Shown here: piece by piece, positions 1 through 22,689 of the stretch
Layout of the letters: every line of letters starts with the position of its first letter
Numbering within the stretch: the stretch's first letter is position 1
Assembly (NCBI GenBank): GCA_963924565.1
Contig: OZ004609.1
Coordinates: 7,502,001-7,566,000, forward strand
Source of the DNA: Ascidiella aspersa
Lineage: Eukaryota
Direction: 5' to 3'
Length of the DNA stretch: 64,000 bases
The notes under the pieces: model-generated
Told to the model about the DNA's origin: nothing
The model's database searches: none
The model's input: the letters and a program-made list of their open reading frames with translations, nothing else
Position numbers and translations under genes: made by a program

Positions 1-1203
1 TACCAAATTGGCGCAAGAGACACCAATTATTATCACTATCGTTTAGGAGGCCAAGATTAGTGTTTTTTATAATTAAACACAACACGTGTAGTTCTAAAAT
101 CTAGACTGCGTATAGCAGTAGAAAGAAATGCGTCCCTACGGTCGTGGAATAGACAAATCTCTGTGCAATATAAATATAGCAAATTAAAATAAAAACACTA
201 ATTTTTGTTTGAAGCCGTACTTTATATACCTTTTGCCCAAACGCAATTGTTGTATCTACATCGGGGTAGACTTTTAAATAAATTGTATTTAGTGCTTAGC
301 CGCAATATTTTTGTGATGTTTTTTGTTTCTTTTGTTTTCATATATCTCAATTGAAATATTTTTAGTATCAGAGCTGATATGCCCGGTGCTAAGTGATATA
401 GTATCGGCACTCGTCCGATATTCTTGTGGTATCGGTGCTAATTTAATCCAACACGATATTGCAATTTGTTTTGCGAGCAAAAGTTGTTAACAGTCAAAAA
501 AGATATTTCAAAATCGTTGTTCATCAACAACCAAGGGTAATTGGGCTTCTCAAAGCTCAAGATCACATTAACCTTGACAAAATGCCTACACACGTTTTAA
601 GTTCGCCAATTTGACTTGTTTGGCCATCGTAGCAACGTTAATCGACTGCGCTTCCGTACTTCGCCCCAAATATCGGCAATCGGAATAAAACACGAAAGAT
701 AGAGAACCCTCTATAGTCACCAAAAGTATTACAGAGCTCTTGGTAACTAACCGTGTTACCGTCTATTTGTGATTTCATACTTGAAGCAATGCACCTGGAT
801 AAACGTTAGTTTTTCGCTACAGTTTTATCTGCAGTTGTTTGTTTTAGACCTAACGAGTCTAACTGTGAAGAAAAAAATGGTTTAGTGTCAAATCACGGGC
901 TCGGGCATTTTACCACAATCTTCCCGGAAACGTTTCTGCAAATCATCGAAAAAAAACCCTGCAAAACGTGAAGAAAGGTGGCAAGAAATGCCACATAACG
1001 TTAGCACTAGTGTCATTTTCTAAAAGACGTTCAACATGCCAGTAACGTAAATTCATCGTTGGGTGACGTCATACTGCTGTGTCGTCCGAGGAAATCTATA
1101 GCTGTAAATTGACAGAAAATTTCTCCAGAGGTTTAGCAAGAGGCACAAAGCAAGGACGAAATAAGCGTCACTGCTTTCGAAAAAAATATTAACGAGAACT
1201 CAC

Positions 1204-1239
1204 CGCAATGCAAGCCAGTAGAACGATCAGGATTCTCAT
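1204..1239 (-). CDS. Copy 0, exon 1 only (signal-peptide exon MRILIVLLACIA); the rest of the gene lies left of the window
   Basis: Same as exon 1 of the other copies: ATG at 1239, GTGAGT donor after 1204, TATATAA at 1305-1311. Confidence 0.88.
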
Positions 1240-1659
1240 CTTCTGCAAGTTTTCTTCCTCTTGTCTTCGAGTGAAAGACTGAAGATGGCTTATTGGTGCG
1301 GCGATTATATAGAGTATCGCGTGGCTTTGAAGAGGTGCTGTTTTTAACAACCAAGAAAAATATTTTTGGGGCCGCTGTTGGAGCACCGGACACCTGAGAC
1401 GCAAAGCACTCTCGACAAATCGCGTCGTGGCCCTCATGCAAGCGCGTTCAGCTAACCTTCAAGTGTAGTTTCGTGCATGCCTGCCACTCTCGCCTGTCAA
1501 TCATCCTGCATCTCGTCTGTGCTGTGAGCCGTTTGTCACATTGATCAAGGGTCTAATCGCGCAGTAATTGCTCTCGGGACGCAAAATTCCGCTAGGTTTG
1601 CGACATCTGAAGTTCCACCTGACGATTGTTGAAGAGCTCTCGTCCAGAGCCGACCTATT

Positions 1660-1856
1660 CCGTGACGATCGAATCGCTGAGGTTTGTATGTTTAAGCACT
1701 ACCTGCCGATGAATCGAGAGCTCGCGCAACAATCAATTCCTCTCGTGCCGATGCAATGTTTTCAACTTGTTATGACGTTGACGATGATGTTGCTATGCCA
1801 CGTGGTGCACACATGTCAAGGGCTAACTAGGAAAATCTACCGGTAATTTTCCACTG
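1660..1856. repeat. Upstream duplicated block, proximal copy (~197 bp; in every unit)
   Basis: Direct repeat of 2331-2526 (ccgtgacgatcgaa...ggtaattttccactg), roughly 85% identical by eye. Confidence 0.93.
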
Positions 1857-1885
1857 TGGTTGGATTCCGCTGACAGTTATCCAGA

Positions 1886-2164
1886 CACTGCAAAAATGGA
1901 TGCTCTCTTAATTAGTTGATGTCTGGATCGCATTTAAGTGAAATGCAGCACTAGGCTACAAAACAATACTATGACTATCAATATCATCACTGTTTACTTT
2001 GATGTAAATCATTCAACACACTAATAAAAGGTGATGTATTTAACTTATCTTTGTTTTTGTCTCAAGCTGTGTCTAAATCAAATAATTTTGTTAATAACGC
2101 TTCAGATGTGTAAGCAAATTATATAAGACCCATTTGTTTTTTTGTCCGATTGGGTTTTACAGTG
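1886..2164. mobile_element. ~280-bp non-autonomous TIR element with CACTG...CAGTG ends (CMC/EnSpm-like MITE); in every unit
   Basis: Left end CACTGCAAAA and right end TTTTACAGTG match at 9/10 as inverted repeats. The interior is AT-rich and non-coding. The flanks GA/TA are an imperfect 2-bp TSD. Confidence 0.55.
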
Positions 2165-2330
2165 TAAATTTCCGAACATCTACATTTTTCCTTGTGTGTT
2201 TCGTAAAATGCTTGCTGCACGTTAAGCCCCAAAGCTGTGTTTTAATTGTTTCAATGTGGTTCGCTACTTCGCACCTTGCAGTAGATACATTTTATTTTAG
2301 GCACCACAATTGGCGCTGTTTTCGAATTAT

Positions 2331-2526
2331 CCGTGACGATCGAACCACTGAGGTTTGTCTGTTTTAAGCATAACCTGCCGATGAATCGAGAGCTCGGGCA
2401 GCAATCAATTGCTCTCGTGACGATGCAATGTTTTCCGGTTGTTATGACGTTGACGATGATGTTGCTATGTCACGTGGCTCACAGATGTCAAGCGCTAAAT
2501 TGGAACTTACTGGTAATTTTCCACTG
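2331..2526. repeat. Upstream duplicated block, distal copy (in every unit)
   Basis: Direct repeat of 1660-1856. Confidence 0.93.
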
Positions 2527-2996
2527 GGATGTATATCAATCAAAGCAGCACTTAGAGTGTATTCGGGTTTTGATTTACCACCTTAGCTTGCCCTGTTAAC
2601 ACGAATTTAGGCACTTTACAACTACTCCTATCTCACATATTTATGGAACATTTCTTTACGACAAACAGTTAACCTAAAGTCTTTTTAAAAACCCAGTTTA
2701 AAAACCTGGGTATGCGTGTGTATGAAGATGGAATTATCTAATTTGATAGGCGCATTATTTCGCTTTAAAAAATACATTTTAATGTTTTTAACAATAGTTT
2801 ATAAAATAAAGTGTTTTTTATCTTGTGTCGATCTTAAACGTATTGTTTAGGTATCACTAATCAGTAACCTGCACTTGATAATTTCGGGGACTTTGGCAAG
2901 TTCTGAACGTTTTAAAATAAATGTAGCAATTATTTTAGCGAAACCGGAAGAAAATACCCTGGTCTGTGTCTGAATTGGTTAGCAAGTATTCAAACA

Positions 2997-3009
2997 CGCC
3001 ACCTAGCAG
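2997..3009 (-). promoter_or_regulatory. CTCF-like motif in the intergenic spacer (in every unit)
   Basis: The minus strand reads CTGCTAGGTGGCG, compared with the CTCF core CCASYAGRKGGCR. Confidence 0.3.
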
Positions 3010-3722
3010 CACAAAGATAATTTAGCAACTGTTACATTTGGCGTTTTTGTTTAAACTTTAGTTGAAATCACTTTTCGGAAAAGCAGCTTTATGTATTGCG
3101 AAGTAGTAATGTTCTTACAACATATCTCCCTTTAAATTTTGTTTTATTCTGTATTTTCTGTTGGAGAAAACGAAATTTAAATATAGTTGTTTTTATTCAA
3201 TTTTCGAGTCATAAATAATATGACTATAGGCCTATCACTTTGCCTCCACTCCAATGCATATTGGCCAAATAGGTGTTTTAGTTTGTATTTATTAAAGGAG
3301 GAATTAAAATATTATCTTAAATGTGCATTTGTTCTGAATATGCTAAAATATATTCAAAATAAAGCGGCTACTTTTTAACATACCCGTGTATGGCAAAGAT
3401 TATTTAGATATTAGTAGGTTTTCTGCAACATATCAGATTTCATGTTGTGCTAAACGGGCTTGAAATGGTTAACTTTTGCATACGCAATAAACTCCTAGAT
3501 TCAATGTAGAGTAACTAAATCATGAAACTTCATTAGGAACATTTTGGTTTATAATTTTTGGCAGTTGAAAAATATTTGTATAATTTTAAGCGCTTAGCAT
3601 ATTTTCAGACAAAACTGCATAAACGTTATTGCTACACTTCATAAATAATATTGTTGCAAAGTTGTATTCAGGTGAAAAGTCAAACAAGGATAAGCATCGA
3701 TGAAGAATACCGCTCGATTTTT

Positions 3723-4052
3723 TGGTTGCGGGGGAGCTGGAAAGGATTGTCTGGCGAGCGGTGATATAGGCAGCTAGTTGAAGAATTTGTGGAAAGTTGC
3801 AGTTCGGGACGGGCGCAAGTGGGTCGGGCTTTGCGGTGAGGGGCAGCCAAAGGGCTTTCGGACAAATTCGGGTTTGCAAAAGGTTTATTTTGTTTCCAAA
3901 ACTGTCTGCGCAACGTTGTTCAGCAGCTAGCTAGCTAGCAGCAAGCAGTTTCACCTTAGGCTCGATTGTTACGTCATAATGCCCTGGAAGGTGGCGAGAT
4001 TCGTATGCGCTAATGCATTAGGGAAAAAGGCCGGTTCAGTATTGGGAGTTTT
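3723..4052. repeat. ~330-bp GC-richer element, copy 3' of the gene (in every unit)
   Basis: Colinear diverged match to 8748-9079. Shared cores include tttattttgt, tgcgcaacgttgttca, ttacgtca-aatgcc, aaggtggcg and gaaaaaggcc. Confidence 0.85.
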
Positions 4053-4338
4053 TTTCTTTGCGATTAGGAGCGTTTATTGGTTTTTGTTTAGTTGTTTATG
4101 TTCGACACAATAAGTCAAAATTTCAAAGTGTTAAACCAAGTTGCGCTTTATTGTTGCTAAAGGGAAAAATAGTTAGAGCTCTAGATTTTATCACATTTTA
4201 GTCGCCATCGAAAATGGGCAAGTTGTTCGAGGGTGCTAACAAACATAAAATGAATGTTGATACTCCTGTTTTATCCTATATCATTAGCAGTATTTCCTGA
4301 AATCAAACAAAACCGTCTGCCCAAAAAAGTCAACTTGA

Positions 4339-4413
4339 AACAAACACAATTTAATGTTGTTATTTTTGTTTTATTTTTCCGCAACGATGTTGGAAATCAA
4401 GTGAAGGTTTATT
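4339..4413 (-). terminator. Polyadenylation region of copy A
   Basis: AATAAA at 4413-4408 (AATAAG in copies C-F). An invariant AATAAA at 4375-4370 is followed about 20-35 nt later by a GT-rich element (ttgtgtttgtttc). Confidence 0.7.
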
Positions 4414-4479
4414 AAGTAAGCCATCACAATTCTAATTGGCACTACGTTTCCGAACATCGTCTGCTGGTTGACGGTATAC

Positions 4480-4534
4480 TCAGCAGAACCTGTAGCGACC
4501 TCCGTAGCAAGACAGGCGGTATCTGTAGGTACGG
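4480..4534 (-). CDS. Copy A exon 11 coding part (CRTYRYRLSCYGGRYRFC-stop)
   Basis: Acceptor ttttctttcAG, phase 2; TGA at 4482-4480; AATAAA downstream. Confidence 0.88.
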
Positions 4535-7500
4535 CTGAAAGAAAACAACAAGGATTAGGTACAAACCAAATATCAGCTTAAAAATTCCAAAACGGTTTGC
4601 GGTTGAATTCTATTGATATGTGTGCCGCAATTTTTCGTTAGAATGGATAGAAGACAATTAACTATATACTAAATGTAAAAAACGCTTCATAAAACGGAAT
4701 AACCTAAGATTAAAAAACAAAAAAGTTTTGCAAACCTTAACGTAACATAACGACAACATTTTCCAAATTACATTACGTAAAGGGCTAGATTCCAATTTGT
4801 TTACATGGGTGCAAAATAGTTAAGACCATAATACTCTCCATCCGAAAGAGATCGTCTTCATAGAACAGAAACACTAAACTATTGCCAATCTTATTGCAAC
4901 GGGAAAACAGCAGGAAAGGTGAAATCAATCTAATTGCAATTAAGTAAATGGCGACTTACCAGTAAGAGCGGTACTTGTAGCGGTAGGTGCAGCCGCTTGG
5001 ATAGCAGATGCTCCACTTGTAGTAGTTGCCGAAGCAGAAGCCGGGGAAGCAGTACCTGGCGATCTTGCATTTGTAACAGCACGAATAATGCTGAACCAAA
5101 GCGGGCAAGTCGGTTTGCCAGCACTCGTCGAACTTGGCAAGGATCTCTTCATCCCTGTATTTGTTCAATGCAGCGAGATATCTGGTGAGGAGTGTGGTGA
5201 CCTCATCGGGCAAGGTTTCGCCGAACATGAACTTCAGCATGCTCGTGTAACGACCAATTTGAACTTGAATGGCCTGGAAAGTGCAGTTTCCAAATAAAAA
5301 CTGGCTCGTTGAATAAAAGGCATTCGCACAGTTTTGCCCAGCGTATGGTGTAGCACTTTTATTTGCGAGTGACCAAAAAACTGAAATCAAGTCCAATGAA
5401 CGCAGAATATTTGTGCAATATTTACTTAATCAACACCGTGTAAATATAATAATACGTTAGACCCCTTATTACTCACATCGTCAACGGCCTTCTTAAGACA
5501 TTCGCGTTGTGCGTCGCGTTTTCCTTCCAACTTTGTCTGATATTCACCGATTGCCGTAGTTCTGTCAGTAAGACACGTTGAGTACTTGGTTTTGACGTCT
5601 TCGATGTAGCCTTCAAGACGCAGTTTGTAGGCGTCGCGTTTTGCGTTGAAGTCTGTCTCGGCATCGTCACGGTAACCCTTGAGCTTTTCCTCGTATTCTG
5701 TCACTTTGCCGTCAACCAAACCTTCCAATTCGCTCTTTTTAGCGTCAACCTCTGTTTGCTGCTCGGTCGTCAGCTCCTTGGAATTGTTGCTGCAAAGTCA
5801 AATAATAACAGTTTAAGCAATTTCAATTAAAAAGTAGTTGATTTTCAGATTTCTGATAACAAGTAGTTGATTTTTGTAAAACAAAGCTCAAGTGATGTTC
5901 GAACCAAAGAACGTCGGAATGGGGACACAAGCAAACTGGAATGAGTTCGAAACTTGGTGAAAGAACGATGTGCTAATGCGGCGATGAAGAAAGCAACTTA
6001 CATGCAATAGTAGTGGTTGATCAATTGGTTGACTTCCCACTCGTCACGAGCCTCGACCACTTCGCGATACTTAGTGGAGTAAGTTGCATGGATACCCTCC
6101 CACTTGAGCTTCCAAGCGTCGAACAAGCCTTGGATTTTAGTGATTGCGTCGTCCTTTGCTGTTGTCATATCCTTAACGGCATCGTCTGCTGTTGGGTTAA
6201 CTGCGTCTGTAAATAGAAGCACAAGTCAAAACAAAATTCATGGCAATATAAGTGTAAACATTGTGCTCCTAAAGAGAAGCCATGGATAGCCGACATTCAA
6301 AAAGTGGTTAAAAATCTATCAAAAGGCGACAAATCGTATTAAACGGCTTTCATGAAAAAGTTTCATAGTTCCTTTAAAAGTCAATTATTGCTTTTGTATG
6401 GCAATAAAAACGTAACTAAAAACAAGGTACAGTATAAATTATTCAAGTTTCGTTTAAAAACTAAACAGAAAGTATCGCATGGTTTACTTACCAACGTCGC
6501 AAGTCTTCAGGCCAGTGTAGCTGACTTTACGCCATCTGTAGCAGAATGGGCCGATGGAGTATGAGCGGACACAATAACTGCTCTTGAAGCAGTACCAGTT
6601 TCTCAGACTGCGACTTTAAACGAAATTAACATTGAGTGGATATTATCTACTGAATTACAACAGGTTTTTAGAAATAATTTACGTGTTTAACATTCTGGTA
6701 AGAGTTTGTCAATTGTAATAACTTTTGTGGCACTTAACCCTTTTCGTATAGGCAGGTTCATATTGACCGTATGAATATTTTGAATAGACAATATAATTAT
6801 GTAGAAAAAAGTACTAGAAATTGTGGAACACGTTTGTTGATATATTTAGTATTTTGTAAAATAGCATTGTTTTATTTATTATTGTGCGATATTCTGTTTA
6901 GTTTTGCAGAATCAAAGCACTCACCATCCATGATAGTAGCTACGCTTGTAGAATTTGAGGTAACAATTGGTGAGGAAGCATCTGTAGGCGCAAGAGTAGT
7001 ACATGACAAGCTTATCCTTATTTTCGTTCAGCTTGGTTTCGTATTCATCCGCCCAACCAGTGATCTTAGCAGTTTCGTCATCGCTGTACTTGGTAATGGC
7101 AGCTTCAATCACCTCGTCGGTCAAATGTGTTTCCGTGTCCAACTTTTCTGTAAATTGTTGCATTGCAATGACATGAGCAGTTATCGCATTGTAAGTTGCT
7201 CGACGTCCAACCTACCGTGAGCGCGTTCAAGGGAGCAACGAAGAGCCGCCTTCTTCTGTTCAAGGATTTTGTTGTGGTATTCGGTGAACTTCGTCTTGTA
7301 GTCGGTCACCTTTTGAGCCAGGGCGGACGTGTACTCACTGATCTTGGTGTTCCTTGTGTTAAGGCATTCGACGGCACTGCAACCAATATTTGACGGTTTG
7401 AATGGCATATAAAAAGGTACTGTGTTTGCTAAATTATAGCACTTGATTTGTCGAGATTAAAATCGTTTTCCACATATCTTGACGTTTACTTAACACTGTG

Positions 7501-10500
7501 ATATATTTATAAACAACTATATGGAATTGCCAGAATGTGCCAAAAAATGTCCTACGGTAATGACTACGTTATCACACATATTAAATTTAAACTTTTTAAA
7601 ATGCCAAATGCAATCGCAGTAAGATTATTGTTGCATATGTTTGGTATTTAGAATTTTTAAGTGAATAAGTATCGAAGGTTTCCAACCGTGAGACCAACTC
7701 CTTGTGGTAATCTTCAACCGCTGTTTTCTTTGCCGCAAGAGCAGTGCCATAATCGCTTTTTGCTTTTGTGACTTTACCGTCGATATCTTCGTTGTAGAGT
7801 CTTATCTTTTCATCCCTTTCGTCGCGAAGTGTTTGTTTATCCGCCTCCTCTTCTTTGGCACTGTTAGAAAGAAAAAAACATTATTACAAGGTTTTGTGAA
7901 TCTTTTTTGTGAAAAAAACAAATAAACATCAAACTGGATCTTTAACAGAAAAAGAAATTTAGCAAAAATTAATGCATCAGGCAGTTTATTGGCCGTACGA
8001 AAATTCGAGTTTGTATGTTTTTTTGTTTAAAATTTTTTAGGCTAATGTTCACCAACAAACATTTCGGACTGTCGTTTTAGCTTTTAAACCAGTGGTTCCC
8101 AAACATGTTTGGCTCGCTGCACCCAAAAAAGTCTTAAGTATTTCGCGGCACACTTTTAACAGAAAACAATAGAGTAATCTTAAAATCGCCCTTAACACAC
8201 GAACTATATGTAAAAGTCTCAAAATTATTAGTTTGTAATGGATAGTGCGTATTTAAGTGTAAAATGATTGTGTATATGCCTATTTGTAATACAAATACTT
8301 ATTACTAAATCATGAAATGTTAATATAAAGAACGTCTAATTACTCAATCAAGTATTTGTAATATGTTTCAATGTGATTCTTGAAGGCATCTTTGTAGAGG
8401 CCGGCACGCTTGTCTAAGTCGGCTTCCCAGTCGGTTTTACGCGAGTCCATCTCTCCAGTGATCCTAGTGTACTCAGTTGAAAGTTCTCCTTCCATTTCTG
8501 TTTTGACTTCGTCGACGGTTTTTTCTGCAAAACAATGGTGATTTTCAGACGGAGAAGCATTACCAAGCTAATACCCTGCATTAAAGAATAACGTTAAGCT
8601 TTTTGCATTCATAAACAGCTTCAACTTACAAGACAAACTTAACTGCTAGATTTTTGACGGTAATGAATAAATAATAAATAAAAGGGGTGGGGCACTGCTA
8701 GATTTAGCACTTGCAGATTATTGCGTCATAATTAAATAAAAACAATGTGGTTTCGAGGGGCGCAAGAGAGTGTTGCCAACAAGGGAGCGGCGAAATGTGC
8801 AGCCAACTGAACAACTCGGTGGAAATCTGTTTTTGGGCTGGATGCCGGAGGGTAATTCGTGGTGGCTATGCGAGGCCAAAGAGTTCCCGAACGAATTTAT
8901 GCGAGGCAACTTCGCAAAAGTTTTATTTTGTCTCCCAAAACCTATGCGCAACGTTGTTCAACAGCTGTCTAGCAGTAACAGTTGACCTAAAGTGCGAGTA
9001 TTACGTCACAATGCCGTGTAAGGTGGCGTGATTTTCTAGTGCTGTAGAGAAAAAGGCCAGTTTAGTAGTGAGTGTATTTCGCAAAAGAAAAAGCAGGCGA
9101 GCACTTTTTCCTTTGCGCATATGCAAGGTTGTTTCATGTTTTAAAGTTTGCATATCTTACGCAGGCTGCTTAAAGTTTAGCAAAAACTTTTAAATTTAGA
9201 GCAACACCAAAAATTATTTATTTAAACAAAATTTCTCCTTACATAAAGCAAAAATGTCTCCTCTAATCTTGTTTTAACGCTCTGCGCCTTGATTTCATTC
9301 TTATTTTTGGCGGTAATTAATTTTAGTTATTCATTGCAAAACTGTATTGTTTTTGAAAACCAGAAATTGGTGATAATCTAAGAAAGCGTCAAACCTTGCC
9401 ATCCCTCTGTCCCACAGTCGCTCTTTGGGTAGTAGCTAAGGATTTTAGTGTAGTAACTGCTCGTGCACCAGCAGCTCTTGAAGTAGACGTTAAACCTCCA
9501 GAAGGTGTAGGGAGGGTAAACGTTGAAATGGTGGGAGCAGTAGTACTTGTAGCCGTACGTATAATAATACGAACCGGCGTTGGCCGCCTGCATTAAACAA
9601 AATGCTGTGATTAGCAAAGTTTTTATTCAGGGAAATTGAAAGTTAAGGTTCCTTGAGCAAATTTATGGACTTAACCTTTACAGTTTTCAGACAAACTTTA
9701 AACAAAGTATATTTTTTATGTATTTGTTTAATCTAAACAATATTCAAAACACAACCAATTTCATTTCAAACCGGCGCTTCTCCTTACCAAGGTAAAAAAG
9801 GCAAACACGCGTGGTTGCTGATAATTTTTATTGGTTAAGCTCAATTTTAACCTCGCAGCAGCCGCAACCAGGATTCCCCGTAGTTGACAAATTCATTAGC
9901 AGGCTTCAATAGGTTGGGCTGCACACATGTTTTCTGTATTCTTAACTAAGATAACCAGTATACCATACGTAAGTAAGTTGCTGAGCACATGTGTTTAGAA
10001 AACCAAAACAGCCTTGAAGCTCTTTTTTTAATTGTTGAAAAACGTACTATACACAAATCGAAAATGGCTAATGAAAATACAACAACAAAAACAACAAGTT
10101 ACGGGTTTTGTTTGAAATATTCAGCAATTTGTTTTATGTTTTACTTGTTTTAGTGCAATACCACAGGCGTTTTGTTTTCAAAAAGAATTTTACATCAATA
10201 GAAGAAAAAAGAACTGAAGAAAAAATTACGAGTTTTAGGCGATAAAACAGTGAGAAATCATTTAAAGGAATAAACATTTAAGGGGATACACTTAAACGCG
10301 CTTTATTATTAGCAGGCTCACTTCCCATCTGTCAACTGTGGGGAATAAAGTATAAAAGTCAAACAAACAACGCGTATATTTCTACTGAATTCGCCTAGAA
10401 TTAGGCGGTATTTCCAACCACTCAACAAAATCAAAACAGTCTCAATAATGGATTGTAGATTGTTGGTAAATTTATCGGGCCTTCAACACATCTAGCCTTG

Positions 10501-12450
10501 TGTAAGGACAAAAGCTGCCTTATATAAAATTTTCAAGTGCGTAGTGGTTAAACGAGGGGTGACACATTTTTCGATGCCGATAATTGTAACAGAGAAACAT
10601 TGTTTTTTGCAAAAACTAAATTAATTTTTTTTTTGTTTTCTATTAAAAAGTCATTCAATTTTTTCCCAAAAATACAGCTTTTAGAAATACGTGGAGGGAA
10701 AATCAATTGTTTTAAAGCTAGCGACCTGAAATTTTTTTTAGTATGTTTTGTTGTTGCTAGGGTTGATTAAAATAGGCTTGCAAAAAATTGTGTCCCTCTT
10801 TTTGTTCAACTAATTACTCGCAATCATTCTCAGTGCCTTAACCAACGTCTGCTGGAACGAAAGAAAAAGCTATTATTTGATGGTTGCTTGAAATCGCGAT
10901 TTAAACATTCAAGTTTACAATGTGCCTTTATCACCTGTCGGATCCACTTTAATCTGATTTTTATGTTAAGATAGTAAATTTTACCAGGGATACCAACTAC
11001 CACAGTCGCACGTTATGCTATTATTGTTCCCTAACGTTACGACGCACAAACAGTTTTAAAGACCTTATGCGAACATTGAAAACAACAAAATTATGCCGTT
11101 GTTTTACGTCATGTTCGGGTTTTGATTTTTAAAAGCACATGAAAAATCTAAGGAATATATCAAATAAATTGAGTCGAAACTAGAAATGTTTTGGTAAAAC
11201 TAAAAGCCCGATTACCAAATTGGCGCAAGAGACACCAATTATTATCACTATCGTTTAGGAGGCCAAGATTAGTGTTTTTTATAATTAAACACAACACGTG
11301 TAGTTCTAAAATCTAGACTGCGTATAGCAGTAGAAAGAAATGCGTCCCTACGGTCGTGGAATAGACAAATCTCTGTGCAATATAAATATAGTAAATTAAA
11401 ATAAAAACACTAATTTTTGTTTGAAGCCGTACTTTATATACCTTTTGCCCAAACGCAATTCTTGTATCTACATCGGGGTAGACTTTTAAATAAATTGTAT
11501 TTAGTGCTTAGCCGCAATATTTTTGTGATGTTTTTTGTTTCTTTTGTTTTCATATATCTCAATTGAAATATTTTTAGTATCAGAGCTGATATGCCCGGTG
11601 CTAAGTGATATAGTATCGGCACTCGTCCGATATTCTTGTGGTATCGGTGCTAATTTAATCCAACACGATATTGCAATTTGTTTTGCGAGCAAAAGTTGTT
11701 AACAGTCAAAAAAGATATTTCAAAATCGTTGTTCATCAACAACCAAGGGTAATTGGGCTTCTCAAAGCGCAAGATCACATTAACCTTGACAAAATGCCTA
11801 CACACGTTTTAAGTTCGCCAATTTGACTTGTTTGGCCATCGTAGCAACGTTAATCGACTGCGCTTCCGTACTTCGCCCCAAATATCGGCAATCGGAATAA
11901 AACACGAAAGATAGAGAACCCTCTATAGTCACCAAAAGTATTACAGAGCTCTTGGCAACTAACCGTGTTACCGTCTATTTGTGATTTCATACTTGAAGCA
12001 ATGCACCTGGATAAACGTTAGTTTTTCTCTACAGTTTTATCTGCAGTTGTTTGTTTTAGACCTAACGAGTCTAACTGTGAAGAAAAAAATGGTTTAGTGT
12101 CAAATCACGGGCTCGGGCATTTTACCACAATCTTCCCGGAAACGTTTCTGCAAATCATCGAAAAAAAACCTGCAAAACGTGAAGAAAGGTGGCAAGAAAT
12201 GCCACATAACGTTAGCACTAGTGTCCTTTTCTAAAAGACGTTCAACATGGCAGTAACGTAAATTCATCGTTGGGTGACGTCATACTGCTGTGTCGTCCGA
12301 GGAAATCTATAGCTGTAAATTGACAGAAAATTTCTCCAGAGGTTTAGCAAGAGGCACAAAGCAAGGACGAAATAAGCGTCACTGCTTTCGAAAAAAATAT
12401 TAACGAGAACTCACCGCAATGCAAGCCAGTAGAACGATCAGGATTCTCAT
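4480..12450 (-). CDS. Copy A: intact 11-exon gene for a ~658-aa secreted Tyr/Cys-rich, helical-rod block protein
   Basis: Coding exons: 12450-12415, 9587-9395, 8524-8344, 7860-7687, 7376-7216, 7147-6925, 6613-6492, 6206-6002, 5789-5477, 5273-4960, 4534-4480. All introns are GT-AG with phases 0,1,2,2,1,2,1,2,0,2. The exons sum to 1977 nt, one open frame ending in TGA. The N-terminus MRILIVLLACIAAANA is a typical signal peptide. Confidence 0.92.
4960..5273 (-). CDS. Copy A exon 10 (AIQVQIGRY...TYRYKYRSY)
   Basis: Acceptor ctttccAG; donor TG|GTAAGT. Confidence 0.9.
5477..5789 (-). CDS. Copy A exon 9 (INNSKELTTEQQ...CLKKAVDD)
   Basis: Acceptor ctttgcAG; donor GAT|GTGAGT, phase 0. Confidence 0.9.
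6002..6206 (-). CDS. Copy A exon 8 (DAVNPTADDAVKDM...LINHYYC)
   Basis: Acceptor tttacAG; donor AT|GTAAGT. Confidence 0.9.
6492..6613 (-). CDS. Copy A exon 7 (CRSLRNWYCFKSSYCVRSYSIGPFCYRWRKVSYTGLKTCDV)
   Basis: Acceptor tttaaAG (an alternative in-frame CAG lies 6 nt downstream); donor G|GTAAGT. Confidence 0.85.
6925..7147 (-). CDS. Copy A exon 6 (EKLDTETHLTDEV...LVMYYSCAYRC...YYHG)
   Basis: Acceptor tttacAG; donor TG|GTGAGT. Confidence 0.9.
7216..7376 (-). CDS. Copy A exon 5 (RAVECLNTRNTKISEY...CSLERAH)
   Basis: Acceptor ttgcAG; donor G|GTAGGT; followed by a 68-nt intron. Confidence 0.88.
7687..7860 (-). CDS. Copy A exon 4 (DAKEEEADKQTLRDERDEK...YHKELVS)
   Basis: Polypyrimidine tract plus ctaacAG; donor CG|GTTGGA (phase 2), compatible with exon 5. 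Confidence 0.86.
8090..8153 (+). mobile_element. Single terminal remnant of a hAT (Buster/Charlie-type) element in intron 3
   Basis: CAGTGGTTCCCAAAC terminus followed by a cgcggcacac subterminal motif. The preceding 8-mer tttTAaac fits the nnnTAnnn target preference. No opposite TIR was found in the intron. Confidence 0.55.
8344..8524 (-). CDS. Copy A exon 3 (EKTVDEVKTEMEGELSTEY...HIETYYKYLI)
   Basis: Acceptor ttttgcAG; donor GA|GTAATT; open, charged helical frame that the ORF track misses. Confidence 0.88.
8748..9079. repeat. ~330-bp GC-richer element, copy in intron 2 (in every unit)
   Basis: Same-orientation diverged match to 3723-4052. Confidence 0.85.
9395..9587 (-). CDS. Copy A exon 2 (AANAGSYYYTYGYKYYC...DCGTEGWQ; first Tyr/Cys block)
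   Basis: Acceptor ttaatgcAG; donor G|GTTTGA (phase 1), compatible with exon 3. Confidence 0.88.
12275..12282. promoter_or_regulatory. Full CRE palindrome TGACGTCA near the 5' end of intron 1 (also 1064-1071 and the other units)
   Basis: Exact 8-bp consensus about 135 bp inside intron 1; function untested. Confidence 0.35.
12415..12450 (-). CDS. Copy A exon 1 (MRILIVLLACIA)
   Basis: ATG lies 41 nt downstream of the Inr +1. The donor is GCG|GTGAGT, phase 0. It joins exon 2 to complete the signal peptide ...AANA. Confidence 0.88.
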
Positions 12451-12487
12451 CTTCTGCAAGTTCTCTTCCTCTTGTCTTCGAGTGAAA

Positions 12488-12522
12488 GACTGAAGATGGC
12501 TTATTGGTGCGGCGATTATATA
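12488..12522 (-). promoter_or_regulatory. Core promoter of copy A: TATA box plus initiator (also upstream of the other exon-1 copies, e.g. 1277-1311)
   Basis: TATATAA at 12522-12516 and TCAGTC at 12493-12488. The A(+1) at 12491 puts the TATA start at -31, the canonical spacing. Confidence 0.85.
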
Positions 12523-15500
12523 GAGTATCGCGTGGCTTTGAAGAGGTGCTGTTTTTAACAACCAGGCAAAATATTTTGTGGCCGCTGTTGGAGCACCGGA
12601 CACCTGAGACGCAAAGCACTCTCGACAAATCGCGTCGTGGCCCTCATGCAAGCGCGTTCAGCTAACCTTCAAGTGTAGTTTCGTGCATGCCTGCCACTCT
12701 CGCCTGTCAATCATCCTGCATATCGTCTGTGCTGTGAGCCGTTTGTCACATTGATCAAGGGTCTAATCGCGCAGTAATTGCTCTCGGGACGCAAAATTCC
12801 GCTAGGTTTGCGACATCTGAAGTTCCACCTGACGATTGTTGAAGAGCTCTCGTCCAGAGCCGACCGATTCCGTGACGATCGAATCGCTGAGGTTTGTATG
12901 TTTAAGCACTACCTGCCGATGAATCGAGAGCTCGCGCAACAATCAATTCCTCTCGTGCCGATGCAATGTTTTCAACTTGTTATGACGTTGACGATGATGT
13001 TGCTATGCCACGTGGTGCACACATGTCAAGGGCTAACTAGGAAAATCTACCGGTAATTTTCCACTGTGGTTGGATTCCGCTGACAGTTATCCAGACACTG
13101 CAAAAATGGATGCTCTCTTAATTAGTTGATGTCTGGATCGCATTTAAGTGAAATGCAGCACTAGGCTACAAAACAATACTATGACTATCAATATCATCAC
13201 TGTTTACTTTGATGTAAATCATTCAACACACTAATAAAAGGTGATGTATTTAACTTATCTTTGTTTTTGTCTTAAGCTGTGTCTAAATCAAATAATTTTG
13301 TTAATAACGCTTCAGATGTGTAAGCAAATTATATAAGACCCATTTGTTTTTTTGTCCGATTGGGTTTTACAGTGTAAATTTCCGAACATCTACATTTTTC
13401 CTTGTGTGTTTCGTAAAATGCTTGCTGCACGTTAAGCCCCAAAGCTGTGTTTTAATTGTTTCAATGTGGTTCGCTACTTCGCACCTTGCAGTAGATACAT
13501 TTTATTTTAGGCACCACAATTGGCGCTGTTTTCGAATTATCCGTGACGATCGAACCACTGAGGTTTGTCTGTTTTAAGCATAACCTGCCGATGAATCGAG
13601 AGCTCGGGCAGCAATCAATTGCTCTCGTGACGATGCAATGTTTTCCGGTTGTTATGACGTTGACGATGAGGTTGCTATGTCACGTGGCTCACAGATGTCA
13701 AGCGCTAAATTGGAACTTACTGGTAATTTTCCACTGGGATGTATATCAATCAAAGCAGCACTTAGAGTGTATTCGGGTTTTGATTTACCACCTTAGCTTG
13801 CCCTGTTAACACGAATTTAGGCACTTTACAACTACTCCTATCTCACATATTTATGGAACATTTCTTTACGACAAACAGTTAACCTAAAGTCTTTTTAAAA
13901 ACCCAGTTTAAAAACCTGGGTATGCGTGTGTATGAAGATGGAATTATCTAATTTGATAGGCGCATTATTTCGCTTTAAAAAATACATTTTAATGTTTTTA
14001 ACAATAGTTTATAAAATAAAGTGTTTTTTATCTTGTGTCGATCTTAAACGTATTGTTTAGGTATCACTAATCAGTAACCTGCACTTGATAATTTCGGGGA
14101 CTTTGGCAAGTTCTGAACGTTTTAAAATAAATGTAGCAATTATTTTAGCGAAACCGGAAGAAAATACCCTGGTCTGTGTCTGAATTGGTTAGCAAGTATT
14201 CAAACACGCCACCTAGCAGCACAAAGATAATTTAGCAACTGTTACATTTGGCGTTTTTGTTTAAACTTTAGTTGAAATCACTTTTCGGAAAAGCAGCTTT
14301 ATGTATTGCGAAGTAGTAATGTTCTTACAACATATCTCCCTTTAAATTTTGTTTTATTTTGTATTTTCTGTTGGAGAAAACGAAATTTAAATATAGTTGT
14401 TTTTATTCAATTTTCGAGTCATAAATAATATGACTATAGGCCTATCACTTTGCCTCCACTCCAATGCATATCGGCCAAATAGGTGTTTTAGTTTGTATTT
14501 ATTAAAGGAGGAATTAAAATATTCTCTTAAATGTGCATTTGTTCTGAATATGCTAAATTATATTCAAAATAAAGCGGCTACTTTTTAACATACCCGTGTA
14601 TGGCAAAGATTATTTAGATATTAGTAGGTTTTCTGCAACATATCAGATTTCATGTTGTGCTAAACGGGCTTGAAATGGTTAACTTTTGCATACGCAATAA
14701 ACTCCTAGATTCAATGTAGAGTAACTAAATCAGGAAACTTCATTAGGAACATTTTGGTTTATAATTTTTGGCAGTTGAAAAATATTTGTATAATTTTAAG
14801 CGCTTAGCATATTTTCAGACAAAACTGCATAAACGTTATTGCTACACTTCATAAATAATATTGTTGCAAAGTTGTATTCAGGTGAAAAGTCAAACAAGGA
14901 TAAGCATCGATGAAGAATACCGCTCGATTTTTTGGTTGCGGGGGAGCTGGAAAGGATTGTCTGGCGAGCGGTGATATAGGCAGCTAGTTGAAGAATTTGT
15001 GGAAAGTTGCAGTTCGGGACGGGCGCAAGTGGGTCGGGCTTTGCGGTGAGGGGCAGCCAAAGGGCTTTCGGACAAATTCGGGTTTGCAAAAGGTTTATTT
15101 TGTTTCCAAAACTGTCTGCGCAACGTTGTTCAGCAGCTAGCTAGCTAGCAGCAAGCAGTTTCACCTTAGGCTCGATTGTTACGTCATAATGCCCTGGAAG
15201 GTGGCGAGATTCGTATGCGCTAATGCATTAGGGAAAAAGGCCGGTTCAGTATTGGGAGTTTTTTTCTTTGCGATTAGGAGCGTTTATTGGTTTTTGTTTA
15301 GTTGTTTATGTTCGACACAATAAGTCAAAATTTCAAAGTGTTAAAACAAGTTGCGCTTTATTGTTGCTAAAGGGAAAAATAGTTAGAGCTCTAGATTTTA
15401 TCACATTTTAGTCGCCATCGAAAATGGGCAAGTTGTTCGAGGGTGCTAACAAACATAAAATGAATGTTGATACTCCTGTTTTATCCTATATCATTAGCAG

Positions 15501-15689
15501 TATTTCCTGAAATCAAACAAAACCGTCTGCCCAAAAAAGTCAACTTGAAACAAACACAATTTAATGTTGTTATTTTTGTTTTATTTTTCCGCAACGATGT
15601 TGGAAATCAAGTGAAGGTTTATTAAGTAAGCCATCACAATTCTAATTGACACTACGTTTCCCAACATCGTCCACTGGTTGACGAGATAC

Positions 15690-18600
15690 TCAGCAGTACC
15701 TGTAGCGACCTCTGTAGCAAGACAGGCGGTATCTGTAGGTACGGCTGAAAGAAAACAACAAGGATTAGGTACAAACCAAATATCAGCTTAAAAATTCCAA
15801 ATCGCTTTGCGGTTGAATTCTATTGATATGTGTGCCGCTATTTTTCGTTAGAATGGATAAAAGACAATTAACTATATACTAAATGTAAAAAACGCTTCAT
15901 AAAACGGAATAACCTAGGATTAAAAACAAAAAAGTTTTGCAAACCTTAACATAACATAACGACAACATTTTCCAAATTACATTACGTAAAGGGCTAGATT
16001 CCAATTTGTTTACATGGGTGCAAAATAGTTAAGACCATAATATTCTCCATCCGAAAGAGATCGTCTTCATAGAACAGAAACACTAAACTATTGCCAATCT
16101 TATTGCAACGGGAAAACAGCAGGAAAGGTGAAATTAATCTAATTGCAAATAAGTAAAAGGCGACTTACCAGTAAGAGCGGTACTTGTAGCGGTAGGTGCA
16201 GCCGCTTGGATAGCAGATGCTCCACTTGTAGTAGTTGCCGAAGCAGAAGCCGGGGAAGCACCACCTGGCGATCTTGCATTTGTAACAGCACGAATAATAC
16301 TGAACCAAAGCGGGCAAGTCGGTTTGCCAGCACTCGTCGAACTTGGCAAGGATCTCGTCATCCCTGTATTTGTTCAATGCCGCGGTATATTTGGTGATGA
16401 GTGTGGTGACCTCATCGGGCAAGGTTTCGCCGAACATGAACTTCAGCATGCTCGTGTAACGACCAATTTGAACAAGAATGGCCTGGAAAGTGCAGTTTAC
16501 AAATAAAAATTAGCTCGTTGTATAAAAGGTATTCGCACAGTTTTTCTCAGCGTATGGTGTAGCACTTTTATTTGCGAGTGACCAAAAAACTGAAATCAAG
16601 TGCAGAATATTTGTGCAATATTTACTTAATCAACACCGTGTAAATATAATAATACGTTAGACCCCTTAGATTTACTCACATCGTCAACGGCCTTCTTAAG
16701 ACATTCGCGTTGTGCGTCGCGTTTTCCTTCCAACTTTGTCTGATATTCACCGATTGCCGTAGTTCTGTCAGTAAGACACGTTGAGTACTTGGTTTTGACG
16801 TCTTCGATGTAGCCTTCAAGACGCAGTTTGTAGGCGTCGCGTTTTGCGTTGAAGTCTGTCTCGGCATCATCACGGTAACCCTTGAGCTTTTCCTCGTATT
16901 CTGTCACTTTGCCGTCAACCAAACCTTCCAATTCGCTCTTTCTAGCGTCAACCGCTGTTTGCTGCTCGGTCGTCAGCTCCTTGGAATTGTTGCTGCAAAG
17001 TCAAATAATAACAGTTTAAGCAATTTCAATTAAAAAGTAGTTGATTTTCAGATTTCTGATAACAAGTAGTTGATTTTTGTAAAACAAAGCTCAAGTGATG
17101 TTCGAACCAAAGAACGTCGGAATGGGGACACAAGCAAACTGGAATGAGTTCGAAACTTGGTGAAAGAACGATGTGCTAATGCGGCGATGAAGAAAGCAAC
17201 TTACATGCAATAGTAGTGGTTGATCAATTGGTTGACTTCCCACTCGTCACGAGCCTCGACCACTTCGCGATACTTAGTGGAGTAAGTTGCATGGATACCC
17301 TCCCACTTGAGCTTCCAAGCGTCGAACAAGTCTTGGATTTTAGTGATTGCGTCGTTCTTTGCTGTTGTCATATCCTTAACGGCATCGTCTGCTGTTGGGT
17401 TAACTGCGTCTGTAAATAGAAGCACAAGTCAAAACAAAATTCATGGCAATATAAGTGTAAACATTGTGCTCCTAAAGAAAAGCCGTGGATAGACGACATT
17501 CAAAAAGTGGTTAAAAATCTATTAAAAGGCGACAAATCGTATTAAACGGCTTTCATGAAAAAGTTTCATAGTTCCTTTAAAAGTCAAATATTGCTTTTTT
17601 ATGGCAATAAAAACGTAACTAAAAACAAGGTAAAGTATAAATTATTCAAGTTTCGTTTAAAAACTAAACAGAAAGTATCGCATGGTTTACTTACCAACGT
17701 CGCAAGTCTTCAGGCCAGTGTAGCTGACTTTACGCCATCTGTAGCAGAATGGGCCGATGGAGTATGAGCGGACACAATAACTGCTCTTGAAGCAGTACCA
17801 GTTTCTCAGACTGCGACTTTAAACGAAATTAACATTGAGTGGATACTATCTACTGAATTACAACAGGTTTTTAGAAATAATTTACGTGTTTAACATTCTG
17901 GTAAGAGTTTGTCAATTGTAATAACTTTTGTGGCACTTAACCCGTTTCGTATAGGCAGGTTCATATTGACCGTATGAATATTTTGAATAGGCAATATAAT
18001 TATGTAGAAAAAGTACTAGGAATTGTGGAACACGTTTGTTGATATATTTAGTATTTTGTAAAATAGCATTGTTTTATTTGTTATTGTGCGATATTCTGTT
18101 TAGTTTTGCAGAATCAAAGCACTCACCATCCATGATAGTAGTTACGCTTGTAGAATTTGAGGTAACAATTGGTGAGGAAGCATCTGTAGGCGCAAGAGTA
18201 GTACATGACAAGCTTATCCTTATTTTCGTTCAGCTTGGTTTCGTATTCATCCGCCCAACCAGTGATCTTAGCAGTTTCGTCATCGCTGTACTTGGTAATG
18301 GCAACTTCAATCACATCGTCGGTCAAATGTGTTTCCGTGTCCAACTTTTCTGTAAATTGTTGCATTGCAATGACTCGAGCAGATATCGCATTGTAAGTTG
18401 CTCGACGTCCAACCTACCGTGAGCGCGTTCAAGGGAGCAACGAAGAGCCGCCTTCTTCTGTTCAAGGATTTTGTTGTGGTATTCGGTGAACTTCGTCTTG
18501 TAGTCGGTCACCTTTTGAGCCAGGGCGGACGTGTATTCAGTGATCTTGGTGTTCCTTGTGTTAAGGCATTCGACGGCACTGCAAACAATATTTGACGGTT

Positions 18601-21600
18601 TGAATGGCATATTAAAAGGTACTGTGTTTGCTAAATTATAGCACTTGATTTGTCAAGATTAAAATCGTTTTCCACATATCTTGACGTTTACTTAACACTG
18701 TGATATATTTATAAACAACTATATGGAATTGCAAGAATGTGCCAAAAAATGTCCTACGGTAATGACTACGTTATCACACATATTAAATTTAAACTTTTTA
18801 AAATGACAAATGCAATCGCTTTATTGTTGCATATGTTTGGTATTTAGATTTTTTAAGTGAATAAGTATTGAAGGTATCCAACCGTGAGACCAACTCCTTG
18901 TGGTAATCTCCAACCGCTGTTTTCTTTGCCGCAAGAGCAGTGCCATAATCGCTTTTTGCTTTTGTGACTTTACCGTCGATATCTTCGTTGTAGAGTCTTA
19001 TCTTTTCATCCCTTTCGTCGCGAAGTGTTTGTTTATCCGCCTCCTCTTCTTTGGCACTTTTAGAAAGAAAAAAACATTATTACAAGGTTTTGTGAATCTC
19101 TTTTGTGAAAAAAACAAATAAACATTAAACTGGATCTTTAACAGAAAAATAAATTGAGCATAAATTAATGTATCAGGCAGTTTATTGGCCGTACGAAAAT
19201 TCGAGTTTGTATGTTTTTTTGTTTAAAATTTATTAGGCTAATGTTCACCACCAACCATTTCGGACTGTCGTTTTAGCTTTTAAACCTGTGGTTCCCAAAC
19301 ATGTTTGGCTCGCTGCACACATAAAAATCTTAAGTATTTCGCGGCACACTTTTAACAGAAAACAATAGAGTAATCTTAAAATCGCCCTTAACACACGACG
19401 AACTATATGTAAAAGTCTCAAAATTATTAGTTTGTAATGGATAGTGCGTATTTAAGTGTAAAATGATTGTGTATATGCCTATTTGTAATACAAATACTTA
19501 TTACTAAATCATGAAATGTTGATATAAAGAACGTCTAATTACTCAATCAAGTATTTGTAATATGTTTCAATGTGATTCTTGAAGGCATCTTTGTAGAGGC
19601 CGGCACGCTTGTCTAAGTCGGCTTCCCAGTCGGTTTTACGCGAGTCCATCTCTCCAGTGATCCTAGTGTACTCAGTTGAAAGTTCTCCTTCCATTTCTGT
19701 TTTGACTTCTTCGACGGTTTTTTCTGCAAAACAATGGTGATTTTCAGATGGAGAAGCATTACCAAGCTAATACCCTGCATTGAAGAATAACGTTAAGCTT
19801 TTTTGCATTCATAAACAGCTTCAACTTACAAGACAAACTTAACTGCTAGACTTTTGACGGTAATGAATAAATAATAAATAAAAGGGGTGGGGCACTGCTA
19901 GATTTAGCACTTGCAGATTATTGCGTCATAATTAAATAAAAACAATGTGGTTTCGAGGGGCGCAAGAGAGTGTTGCCAACAAGGGAGCGGCGAAATGTGC
20001 AGCCAACTGAACAACTCGGTGGAAATCTGTTTTTGGGCTGGATGCCGGAGGGTAATTCGTGGTGGCTATGCGAGGCCAAAGAGTTCCCGAACGAATTTAT
20101 GCGAGGCAACTTCGCAAAAGTTTTATTTTGTCTCCCAAAACCTATGCGCAACGTTGTTCAACAGCTGTCTAGCAGTAACAGTTGACCTAAAGTGCGAGTA
20201 TTACGTCACAATGCCGTGTAAGGTGGCGTGATTTTCTAGTGCTGTAGAGAAAGGCCAGTTTAGTAGTGAGTGTATTTCGCAAAAGAAAAAGCAGGCGAGC
20301 ACTTTGCTTTTTCCTTTGCGCATATGCAAGGTTGTTTCATGTTTTAAAGTTTGCATATCTTACGCAGGCTGCTTAAAGTTTAGCAAAAACTTTTAAATTT
20401 AGAGCAACACCAAAAACAACAAGTTACGGGTTTTGTTTGAAATATTCAGCAATTTGTTTTATGTTTTACTTGTTTTAGTGCAATACCACAGGCGTTTTGT
20501 TTTCAAAAAGAATTTTACATCAATAGAAGAAAAAAGAACTGAAGAAAAAATTACGAGTTTTAGGCGATAAAACAGTGAGAAATCATTTAAAGGAATAAAC
20601 ATTTAAGGGGATACACTTAAACGCGCTTTATTATTAGCAGGCTCACTTCCCATCTGTCAACTGTGGGGAATAAAGTATAAAAGTCAAACAAACAACGCGT
20701 ATATTTCTACTGAATTCGCCTAGAATTAGGCGGTATTTCCAACAACTCAACAAAATCAAAACAGTCTCAATAATGGATTGTAGATTGTTGGTAAATTTAT
20801 CGGGCCTTCAACACATCTAGCCTTGTGTAAGGACAAAAGCTGCCTTAGATAAAATTTTCAAGTGCGTAGTGGTTAAACGAGGGGTGACACATTTTTCGAT
20901 GCCGATAATTGTAACAGAGAAACATTGTTTTTTGCAAAAACTAAATTAATTTTTTTTTTGTTTTCTATTAAAAAGTCATTCAATTTTTTCCCAAAAATAC
21001 AGCTTTTAGAAATACGTGGAGGGAAAATCAATTGTTTTAAAGCTAGCGACCTGAAAATTTTTTTAGTATGTTTTGTTGTTGCTAGGGTTGATTAAAATAG
21101 GCTTGCAAAAAATTGTGTCCCTCTTTTTGTTCAACTTATTTCTCGCAATCATTCTCAGTGCCTTAACCAACGTCTGCTGGAACGAAAGAAAAAGCTATTA
21201 TTTGATGGTTGCTTGAAATCGCGATTTAAACATTCAAGTTTACAATGTGCCTTTATCACCTGTCGGATCCACTTTAATCTGATTTTTATGTTAAGATAGT
21301 AAATTTTACCAGGGATACCAACTACCACAGTCGCACGTTATGCTATTATTGTTCCCTAACGTTACGACGCACAAACAGTTTTAAAGACCTTATGCGAACA
21401 TTGAAAACAACAAAATTATGCCGTTGTTTTACGTCATGTTCGGGTTTTGATTTTTAAAAGCACATGAAAAATCTAAGGAATATATCAAATAAATTGAGTC
21501 GAAACTTAGTGTTTTTTATAATTAAACACAACACGTGTAGTTCTAAAATCTAGACTGCGTATAGCAGTAGAAAGAAATGCGTCCCTACGGTCGTGGAATA

Positions 21601-22689
21601 GACAAATCTCTGTGCAATATAAATATAGTAAATTAAAATAAAAACACTAATTTTTGTTTGAAGCCGTACTTTATATACCTTTTGCCCAAACGCAATTCTT
21701 GTATCTACATCGGGGTAGACTTTTAAATAAATTGTATTTAGTGCTTAGCCGCAATATTTTTGTGATGTTTTTTGTTTCTTTTGTTTTCATATATCTCAAT
21801 TGAAATATTTTTAGTATCAGAGCTGATATGCCCGGTGCTAAGTGATATAGTATCGGCACTCGTCCGATATTCTTGTGGTATCGGTGCTAATTTAATCCAA
21901 CACGATATTGCAATTTGTTTTGCGAGCAAAAGTTGTTAACAGTCAAAAAAGATATTTCAAAATCGTTGTTCATCAACAACCAAGGGTAATTGGGCTTCTC
22001 AAAGCGCAAGATCACATTAACCTTGACAAAATGCCTACACACGTTTTAAGTTCGCCAATTTGACTTGTTTGGCCATCGTAGCAACGTTAATCGACTGCGC
22101 TTCCGTACTTCGCCCCAAATATCGGCAATCGGAATAAAACACGAAAGATTAGAGAACCCTCTATAGTCACCAAAAGTATTACAGAGCTCTTGGTAACTAA
22201 CCGTGTTACCGTCTATTTGTGATTTCATACTTGAAGCAATGCACCTGGATAAACGTTAGTTTTTCGCTACAGTTTTATCTGCAGTTGTTTGTTTTAGACC
22301 TAACGAGTCTAACTGTGAAGAAAAAAATGGTTTAGTGTCAAATCACGGGCTCGGGCATTTTACCACAATCTTCCCGGAAACGTTTCTGCAAATCATCGAA
22401 AAAAAAACCTGCAAAACGTGAAGAAAGGTGGCAAGAAATGCCACATAACGTTAGCACTAGTGTCCTTTTCTAAAAGACGTTCAACATGCCAGTAACGTAA
22501 ATTCATCGTTGGGTGACGTCATACTGCTGTGTCGTCCGAGGAAATCTATAGCTGTAAATTGACAGAAAATTTCTCCAGAGGTTTAGCAAGAGGCACAAAG
22601 CAAGGACGAAATAAGCGTCACTGCTTTCGAAAAAAATATTAACGGGAACTCACCGCAATGCAAGCCAGTAGAACGATCAGGATTCTCAT
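15690..22689 (-). pseudogene. Copy B: exon 2 deleted; predicted frameshifted pseudogene
   Basis: Exon 1 is at 22689-22654. Exons 3-11 are at 19723-19543, 19056-18883, 18578-18418, 18349-18127, 17816-17695, 17409-17205, 16992-16680, 16482-16169, 15744-15690. The 193-nt exon 2 is missing (junction 20411-20416). Joining exon 1 (phase 0) to exon 3 (phase 1) reaches a TAG inside exon 3. Confidence 0.85.

Follow-up and report, generated by a model that had tools for sequence, protein, structure and literature searches.

The thyroid has its evolutionary forerunner in the endostyle, the organ that makes the feeding mucus net of ascidians. The Ciona genes that gave the family of the gene described here its name were reportedly isolated by Ogasawara and Satoh in 1998 in a differential screen of cDNA from the endostyle, and are said to mark the protein-secreting zones of the organ. 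To our knowledge the protein make-up of the ascidian mucus net is still poorly defined, and we know of no use of the Ends family other than as an expression marker. Here we describe a gene of Ascidiella aspersa in a stretch of 64,000 nucleotides (contig OZ004609.1 of assembly GCA_963924565.1, positions 7,502,001 to 7,566,000 of the forward strand), referred to below as the window and numbered from its first letter. The gene lies on the minus strand (12450..4480), is composed of 11 exons, and is real and transcribed. Sequence comparison places its product of 658 amino acids (aa) among the ascidian "endostyle-specific" proteins of the CiEnds1/BAA24830 type, a known but biochemically uncharacterised family for which the species is new and the kind of protein is not. 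We consider it probable that this is a transcribed gene for a secreted protein of the endostyle family, made by the gland cells of the endostyle and released into the feeding mucus, either the net or the food cord.

Two cDNA-derived Ciona intestinalis entries, the founders of the family and paralogues of each other, carry the GenBank name "endostyle-specific precursor": BAA24829.1 (O44236, NP_001099017.1, mRNA AB010895) and BAA24830.1 (O44237, NP_001107601.1, mRNA AB010896). Published quantitative PCR primers yield amplicons of 210 bp for CiEnds1 (AB010895.1) and of 132 bp for AB010896.1 (PMC7347631). When translated, the CiEnds1 primers map to residues 177 and 240 of BAA24829, i.e. to 70 aa or 210 bp, which is the published amplicon, and the AB010896.1 primers fall within BAA24830, where they span the published 132 bp. 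On this primer match BAA24829 is identified with CiEnds1. CiEnds1 resembles the window protein in its length of about 650 aa, its signal peptide, its N-terminal Tyr/Cys module and its two helical units, and BAA24830 has the same layout of about 650 aa. Both share with the window protein the Y-x-C-x-Y-x-C and H-Y-x-C-x-Y-K-C motifs and a basic Tyr/Cys tail.

The spliced model was compared with the fetched family proteins by local blastp. CiEnds1 and BAA24830 are colinear with it but only 35-36% identical (BAA24829, 34.6%, E 4e-104; BAA24830, 35.8% over 631 columns, E 1e-126). The best matches are Ciona intestinalis LOC100186110 (XP_078492549.1) and Ciona savignyi H2YRI4, which have the same architecture and are both uncharacterised; the best alignment extends over 645 columns at 39.7% identity (E 4e-153). 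Taken together, the Ciona proteins align with the spliced model end to end at 35-40% identity (E 1e-107 to 1e-153), and the alignment with the homologues is continuous through every exon junction. The same family includes Styela clava LOC120332193-5 and LOC120332836-48 and Clavelina lepadiformis LOC143452698/9, with 27-32% identity to the window protein. A maximum-likelihood tree groups the window protein with the clades from Ciona (support 81/96).

Exon 10 was the query of a phmmer search against 1.84 billion representative proteins, which returned 16 proteins, among them full-length relatives of 603-670 aa which match at their C-termini. One of the sixteen, P0001, was rejected as a spurious repeat match. 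Grouped by cluster, the relatives come from Ciona savignyi, Ciona intestinalis, Styela clava and Clavelina lepadiformis, and a distant group is found in marine metatranscriptomes only. These distant members (P0013, P0016, P0008 and P0015) are 22-24% identical, have the same architecture with few Tyr, and may come from pelagic tunicates. Two further searches, one using the family alignment and the other the block 2 region of P0003, gave three proteins each, and no Halocynthia sequence was among the matches of the family protein searches. An earlier reading, made from the letters of the window without database searches (the sequence-only reading), had recognised no catalytic or standard extracellular domain in the protein. 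This holds for Pfam, where the exon-by-exon scan and the scan of the full-length homologues gave no domain above threshold, but the protein is not an orphan, as it has a full-length match to the endostyle-specific family. The family is not named in the supplements of two published endostyle transcriptome studies.

The region is AT-rich eukaryotic DNA whose coding patches are short and lie on the minus strand, and the sequence-only reading had proposed an 11-exon gene in it. The model is borne out by the splice sites, every intron being of the GT-AG type (AG/GT sites listed) with the frame kept, by the end-to-end homology, and by ten of the 13 copies of the surrounding array, which retain the full frame. 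Exon 7 has two candidate acceptors. The AG at 6613 gives a coding sequence of 1977 nt and the 658-aa protein, and the AG at 6607 gives 656 aa, i.e. two residues fewer. The acceptor at 6613 was preferred because it is the first AG after a pyrimidine-rich tract, because with it a two-residue gap against all homologues disappears and the blastp scores rise, and because the gene copies of a second array keep this AG and have lost the one at 6607. The 656-aa model was dropped, with its poorer fit to the homologues and the loss of its AG in the second array.

Spliced contigs of run X1 contain three of the ten junctions (4534/4960, 5272-3/5476-7 and 7860/8344), with GT..AG ends on the minus strand, and the joints coincide exactly with the predicted junctions of exons 10-11, 9-10 and 3-4. 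For the other seven junctions the support comes from splice consensus, frame and homology only. The unspliced form is present in the DNA-like runs X2 and X4. A search of the array unit in Rfam gave no match, and the intergenic open reading frames of the unit, when examined, offered no convincing second gene. In intron 3 the element at 8117-8293 shows about ten times the contig depth of its surroundings in X2, and partial RNA-seq reads of run X6 with unrelated flanks fall on the same element; on account of the high depth and of these flanks it is probably a dispersed repeat.

The product is composed, in this order, of signal peptide, block 1, rod 1, block 2, rod 2 and block 3. The signal peptide comprises residues 1-16. 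On inspection of the sequences the N-terminus is a hydrophobic stretch with A-x-A at its end, and every aligned family member has it conserved; the 658-aa protein is accordingly annotated as carrying a predicted N-terminal secretion signal. Block 1 (17-76) contains 14 Tyr and 4 Cys, block 2 (296-361) 12 Tyr and 8 Cys, and block 3 (598-658) 14 Tyr and 10 Cys, with neither Asp nor Glu in blocks 2 and 3; the aromatic/basic run TYRYKYRSYCRTYRYR is found in the product. The signal peptide, the order of blocks and rods and the Tyr and Cys counts given by the sequence-only reading were all reproduced with the 6613 acceptor, and its description of the blocks as basic and rich in Tyr and Cys was equally upheld. 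The mature protein has a mass of about 76 kDa, an isoelectric point of about 7.4, 10% Tyr, 28 Cys and one N-glycosylation sequon.

The two halves of the protein (77-361 and 362-658) match each other as homologues (blastp E 7e-13; hhalign probability 99.4%, E 5e-21), and sequence comparison confirms them as an old internal duplication. Judged from the alignments, the N-terminal part is a basic Tyr/Cys/Trp module, after which an ancient unit of about 290 aa occurs twice. Each unit closes with a basic Cys/Tyr module which begins at a conserved Y-x-C-x-Y-x-C motif, and the family alignments contain invariant Y/C columns. All family members have basic, Cys-rich blocks. A high Tyr content is seen in the ascidian members and not in the distant metatranscriptome group, in which each block has only 1-6 Tyr. 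As these distant members nevertheless retain the Cys and the architecture, Tyr does not belong to the conserved core, and this limits the idea of cross-linking through Tyr. The rods differ in charge: they are net acidic in the window protein (-12 and -13), neutral to basic in Ciona, and strongly basic in the Styela and Clavelina members. Among the family members compared, net acidic rods are peculiar to Ascidiella aspersa, which limits the assembly idea of the sequence-only reading; an assembly by charge complementarity between acidic rods and basic blocks was rejected, since it is not family-wide. The hydrophobic periodicity of the rods was not above that of shuffled controls.

An AlphaFold2 model was computed for the closest homologue, Ciona P0049, with a family alignment of 14 sequences, and has a mean predicted local distance difference test score of 80. 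The model has three helices in the first half, at 75-133 (59 residues), 137-243 (107) and 250-293 (44), and three in the second, at 361-428 (68 residues), 435-547 (113) and 554-596 (43). Confidence is moderate for block 1 and part of block 2, where the Y-x-C-x-Y-x-C motif is modelled as a short hairpin, and low for block 3. Each unit is thus predicted to form an elongated bundle of three long helices, which would measure about 16 nm if the helix of about 110 residues is straight. The rods had been proposed to be helical, and helical they are in this model, but each is predicted as three helices of about 60, 110 and 44 residues and not as a single helix. A Foldseek search of the PDB with the P0049 model gave nothing below E = 1. 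In a VIA structure search the best match was a designed three-helix bundle with Z 10.2, a value of the size to be expected for any long-helix model. The structure searches returned generic long-helix bundles only, and no family member has a relative of solved structure.

The window lies within a tandem array of the gene. Copies were searched for in the whole 308.6-Mb assembly, in which the window corresponds to 7502001-7566000 of contig C3. Array A, to which the window belongs, has 13 units at 7.473-7.614 Mb of C3, and array B, at 8.07-8.18 Mb of the same contig, consists of five full copies plus an inverted fragment. The gene is therefore amplified to 13 + 6 copies here, unlike CiEnds1 and BAA24830 in Ciona. 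The copies are 99-100% identical over long stretches. In array A every exon and splice site and the frame are intact in ten of the 13 copies, which between them encode nine distinct proteins; the three broken copies have lost exon 2, carry an 11-nt deletion in exon 6, or have a truncated exon 2. The loss of exon 2 in copy 2 is an 866-bp deletion, corresponding to 9214-10079 of copy 1, with its junction near 20405-20416 and an overlap of about 12 nt, and splicing of exon 1 to exon 3 in this copy would break the frame. Compared with copy 1 it has 19 non-synonymous and 3 synonymous codon differences, the most amino acid changes of any copy. Copy 3 has a GC donor in place of GT after exon 8 (27448-27449) and an otherwise intact frame.

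Within array A the pairwise ratio of non-synonymous to synonymous divergence (dN/dS) is 0.55, and between the two arrays it is 0.41, which indicates that the copies are kept under mild purifying selection. Exon 10 is the most variable part, with 7.3% segregating sites against 0-3% in the other exons of the array copies. It has diverged 4-6 times more than the rest, at synonymous and non-synonymous sites alike. Positive selection in this exon was considered and rejected, as the synonymous divergence is equally raised and dN/dS is 0.59; that both classes of sites are raised points to patchy gene conversion instead. A profile search of the genome found further clusters of the family at 25.10-25.16 Mb of contig C7, 6.08-6.15 Mb of C4 and 3.765 Mb of C1, and the family probably totals about 40 genes in this genome. 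Of these clusters and array B, some have genes in both orientations, and introns appear to be shorter. In Styela many near-identical copies are likewise present on one contig, so that amplification recurs within the family. In the spacer between gene copies, two related stretches resembling open reading frames (12778-13056 and 13543-13809) share a peptide-like run ...NRELAQQSIPLV... and are probably a duplicated mobile-element fragment. The features of the window are collected in Table 1.

Table 1. Features of the gene and of the tandem array in the window (positions within the window; X1, run with spliced contigs).
Feature	Position	Strand	Remarks
TATA-like box CTATATAA	12516..12523	-	66-73 nt upstream of ATG; read from sequence, putative function
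Exon 1: ATG and first 12 signal-peptide residues	12415..12450	-	N-terminus conserved in all homologues
Exon 2: signal-peptide end and Tyr/Cys/Trp block 1	9395..9587	-	cleavage probably after ...AANA; exon deleted in array copy 2
Exon 3: rod 1, first helix	8344..8524	-	X1 contig covers whole exon and joins exon 4
Exon 4: rod 1	7687..7860	-	joint 7860/8344 in X1; frame
Exon 5: rod 1 with conserved C-L-x-T-R motif	7216..7376	-	splice sites and frame; homologue alignment
Exon 6: rod 1 third helix and block 2 start (Y-x-C-x-Y-x-C motif)	6925..7147	-	frame; alignments
Exon 7: remainder of block 2	6492..6613	-	acceptor 6613 preferred over 6607, from sequence, not reads
Exon 8: rod 2, first helix	6002..6206	-	frame; half-to-half alignment
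Exon 9: rod 2, long helix	5477..5789	-	joint to exon 10 in X1; sub-threshold Pfam Apolipoprotein match
Exon 10: rod 2 third helix and most of block 3	4960..5273	-	X1 joints; most variable exon among array copies
Exon 11: block 3 end and stop (4482-4480)	4480..4534	-	joint 4534/4960 in X1
AATAAA polyadenylation signal	4408..4413	-	67-72 nt past stop; X1 contig unspliced 4533 to 4406
Tandem array	1..64000	-	unit of ~11.2 kb, ~5.7 units in window
Array copy 2	15690-22689	-	broken, exon 2 deleted
Array copy 3	25931-33900	-	further gene copy
Further gene copy	37139-45105	-	array A
Further gene copy	48345-56330	-	array A
Further gene copy	59572 to past window end	-	array A
Exon 1 of upstream copy	1204-1239	-	array A

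The reading which we regard as probable is that of a protein made by the gland cells of the endostyle, whose product would enter the pharyngeal feeding mucus as part of the net or the food cord. The helical units of such a protein may be spacers, and disulfide or aromatic contacts or cross-links may form at its Cys/Tyr modules. A role in a secreted mesh fits with the production of the feeding net by the endostyle, and the many near-identical tandem copies fit a product made in bulk. Several points weigh against this reading. The tree leaves undecided whether the CiEnds1/BAA24830 group or the LOC100186110 group is orthologous to the window protein, and endostyle expression is therefore inferred across paralogues. 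Run X1, the source of the spliced contigs, was guessed to be RNA and is not labelled by tissue. Hardly any reads of X6, the one run labelled as RNA-seq, fall on the gene, which says little about silence, because its tissue is unlabelled and about 6% of the run was read. Finally, the structural model is that of a homologue of about 40% identity rather than of the window protein, with blocks that are partly of low confidence. The undecided orthology and the unlabelled contigs would also suit a paralogue that has diverged in expression from CiEnds1 and serves as a secreted structural or adhesive protein outside the endostyle, in the tunic, the adhesive papillae, the egg coat or the gut lining, and the large size of the family in this genome, with five clusters, leaves room for such a use. 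However, expression has been reported only for members that bear the endostyle-specific name, and architecture and signal peptide are conserved throughout the family, so that we hold a use outside the endostyle to be rather unlikely. An artefact of assembly, or an array of dead, functionless copies, as its near-identity over long stretches and its three broken copies of 13 might suggest, is hardly credible: the copies differ by scattered sites and indels, ten of them have the 11 exons with their splice sites and frame intact, nine distinct proteins are encoded by these ten, dN/dS is below 1, spliced transcript-like contigs exist, and the sequence is present in independent runs of four studies.

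Other explanations concern what the protein would do rather than whether or where it is made. Ascidian endostyles make iodotyrosines and thyroxine (T4) without a thyroglobulin gene (review PMC13078365), and a protein with an endostyle-specific family name and with 10% Tyr, concentrated in exposed basic blocks, could be an exocrine substrate which is iodinated by the endostyle peroxidase, swallowed and digested to iodotyrosines and thyroid hormone, i.e. a "proto-thyroglobulin". This idea loses weight because a functional thyroid-hormone precursor has been identified in Styela clava as a 630-kDa protein with Tg1 domains in zones 7-9 (PMC12992692). The thyroglobulin-type comparison of the present protein gave a size of 658 aa and no Tg1 domain in Pfam scans of its exons and of the full-length homologues, nor any other Pfam domain, and the distant members have kept the Cys with only few Tyr in each block. 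We regard a dedicated iodination substrate as unlikely, and incidental iodination of a Tyr-rich mucus protein as possible. The helices themselves recall the apolipoproteins ApoA-I, A-IV and E (PF01442), whose long amphipathic helices in elongated bundles show a weak but recurrent similarity to this family: exon 9 of the window matches PF01442 at 6.6e-5 (23 bits), Styela P0005 at 1.2e-4 and metatranscriptome P0013 at 2.6e-10 (40.8 bits, 167 profile positions), and the family profile matches ApoA-I chains in the PDB at 4e-5. Bundles of this type might open to bind lipid or hydrophobic particles, for particle capture or lipid carriage, and would not form a load-bearing polymer. However, all scores are far under the Pfam gathering cut-off of 90 bits, the family maximum being 40.8; long helices rich in Lys, Glu, Ala and Leu commonly yield such matches; the hydrophobic periodicity of the rods is no higher than in shuffles; and the structure searches returned generic bundles. 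Apolipoproteins are also without Cys/Tyr modules, and no 11/22-mer periodicity could be demonstrated in the present protein. The matches are best read as a resemblance between amphipathic helices and not as membership, an analogy at most, and a lipid-binding function appears quite unlikely.

Two further groups of secreted proteins were compared. Gel-forming mucins and von Willebrand factor-like endostyle proteins of the CiVWFL type are no match, as no VWD, C8 or TIL domain was found by Pfam. Mussel foot proteins and similar Tyr/Lys/Arg-rich marine adhesive or structural proteins are secreted, basic, rich in aromatic residues and made in bulk. The sequence-only reading had compared the protein with this type and proposed a building block that would polymerise by way of disulfides, cation-pi contacts, dityrosine or DOPA, which is reasonable as a candidate scheme. 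The window protein has no sequence relation to the mussel foot protein type, and its chain is predicted to be mostly ordered helix.

A more specific proposition can be made for the family, and we hold it to be doubtful: Ends proteins would be the filament-forming sticker-rod subunits of the chordate filter-feeding net, linked end to end at their basic Cys/Tyr modules via disulfide exchange and via peroxidase-formed dityrosine or iodotyrosine, and would at the same time be the exocrine iodoprotein that the endostyle makes in bulk. If true, this would tie the assembly of the feeding net to the origin of thyroid iodine chemistry. The present work adds to the family a checked gene model from another ascidian, an architecture of two three-helix units with Cys/Tyr modules, a heavy amplification with about 19 copies of the paralogue and, counting the second array, four more clusters, and relatives from marine metatranscriptomes. 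With these additions the family is a concrete candidate component for studies of the mucus net.

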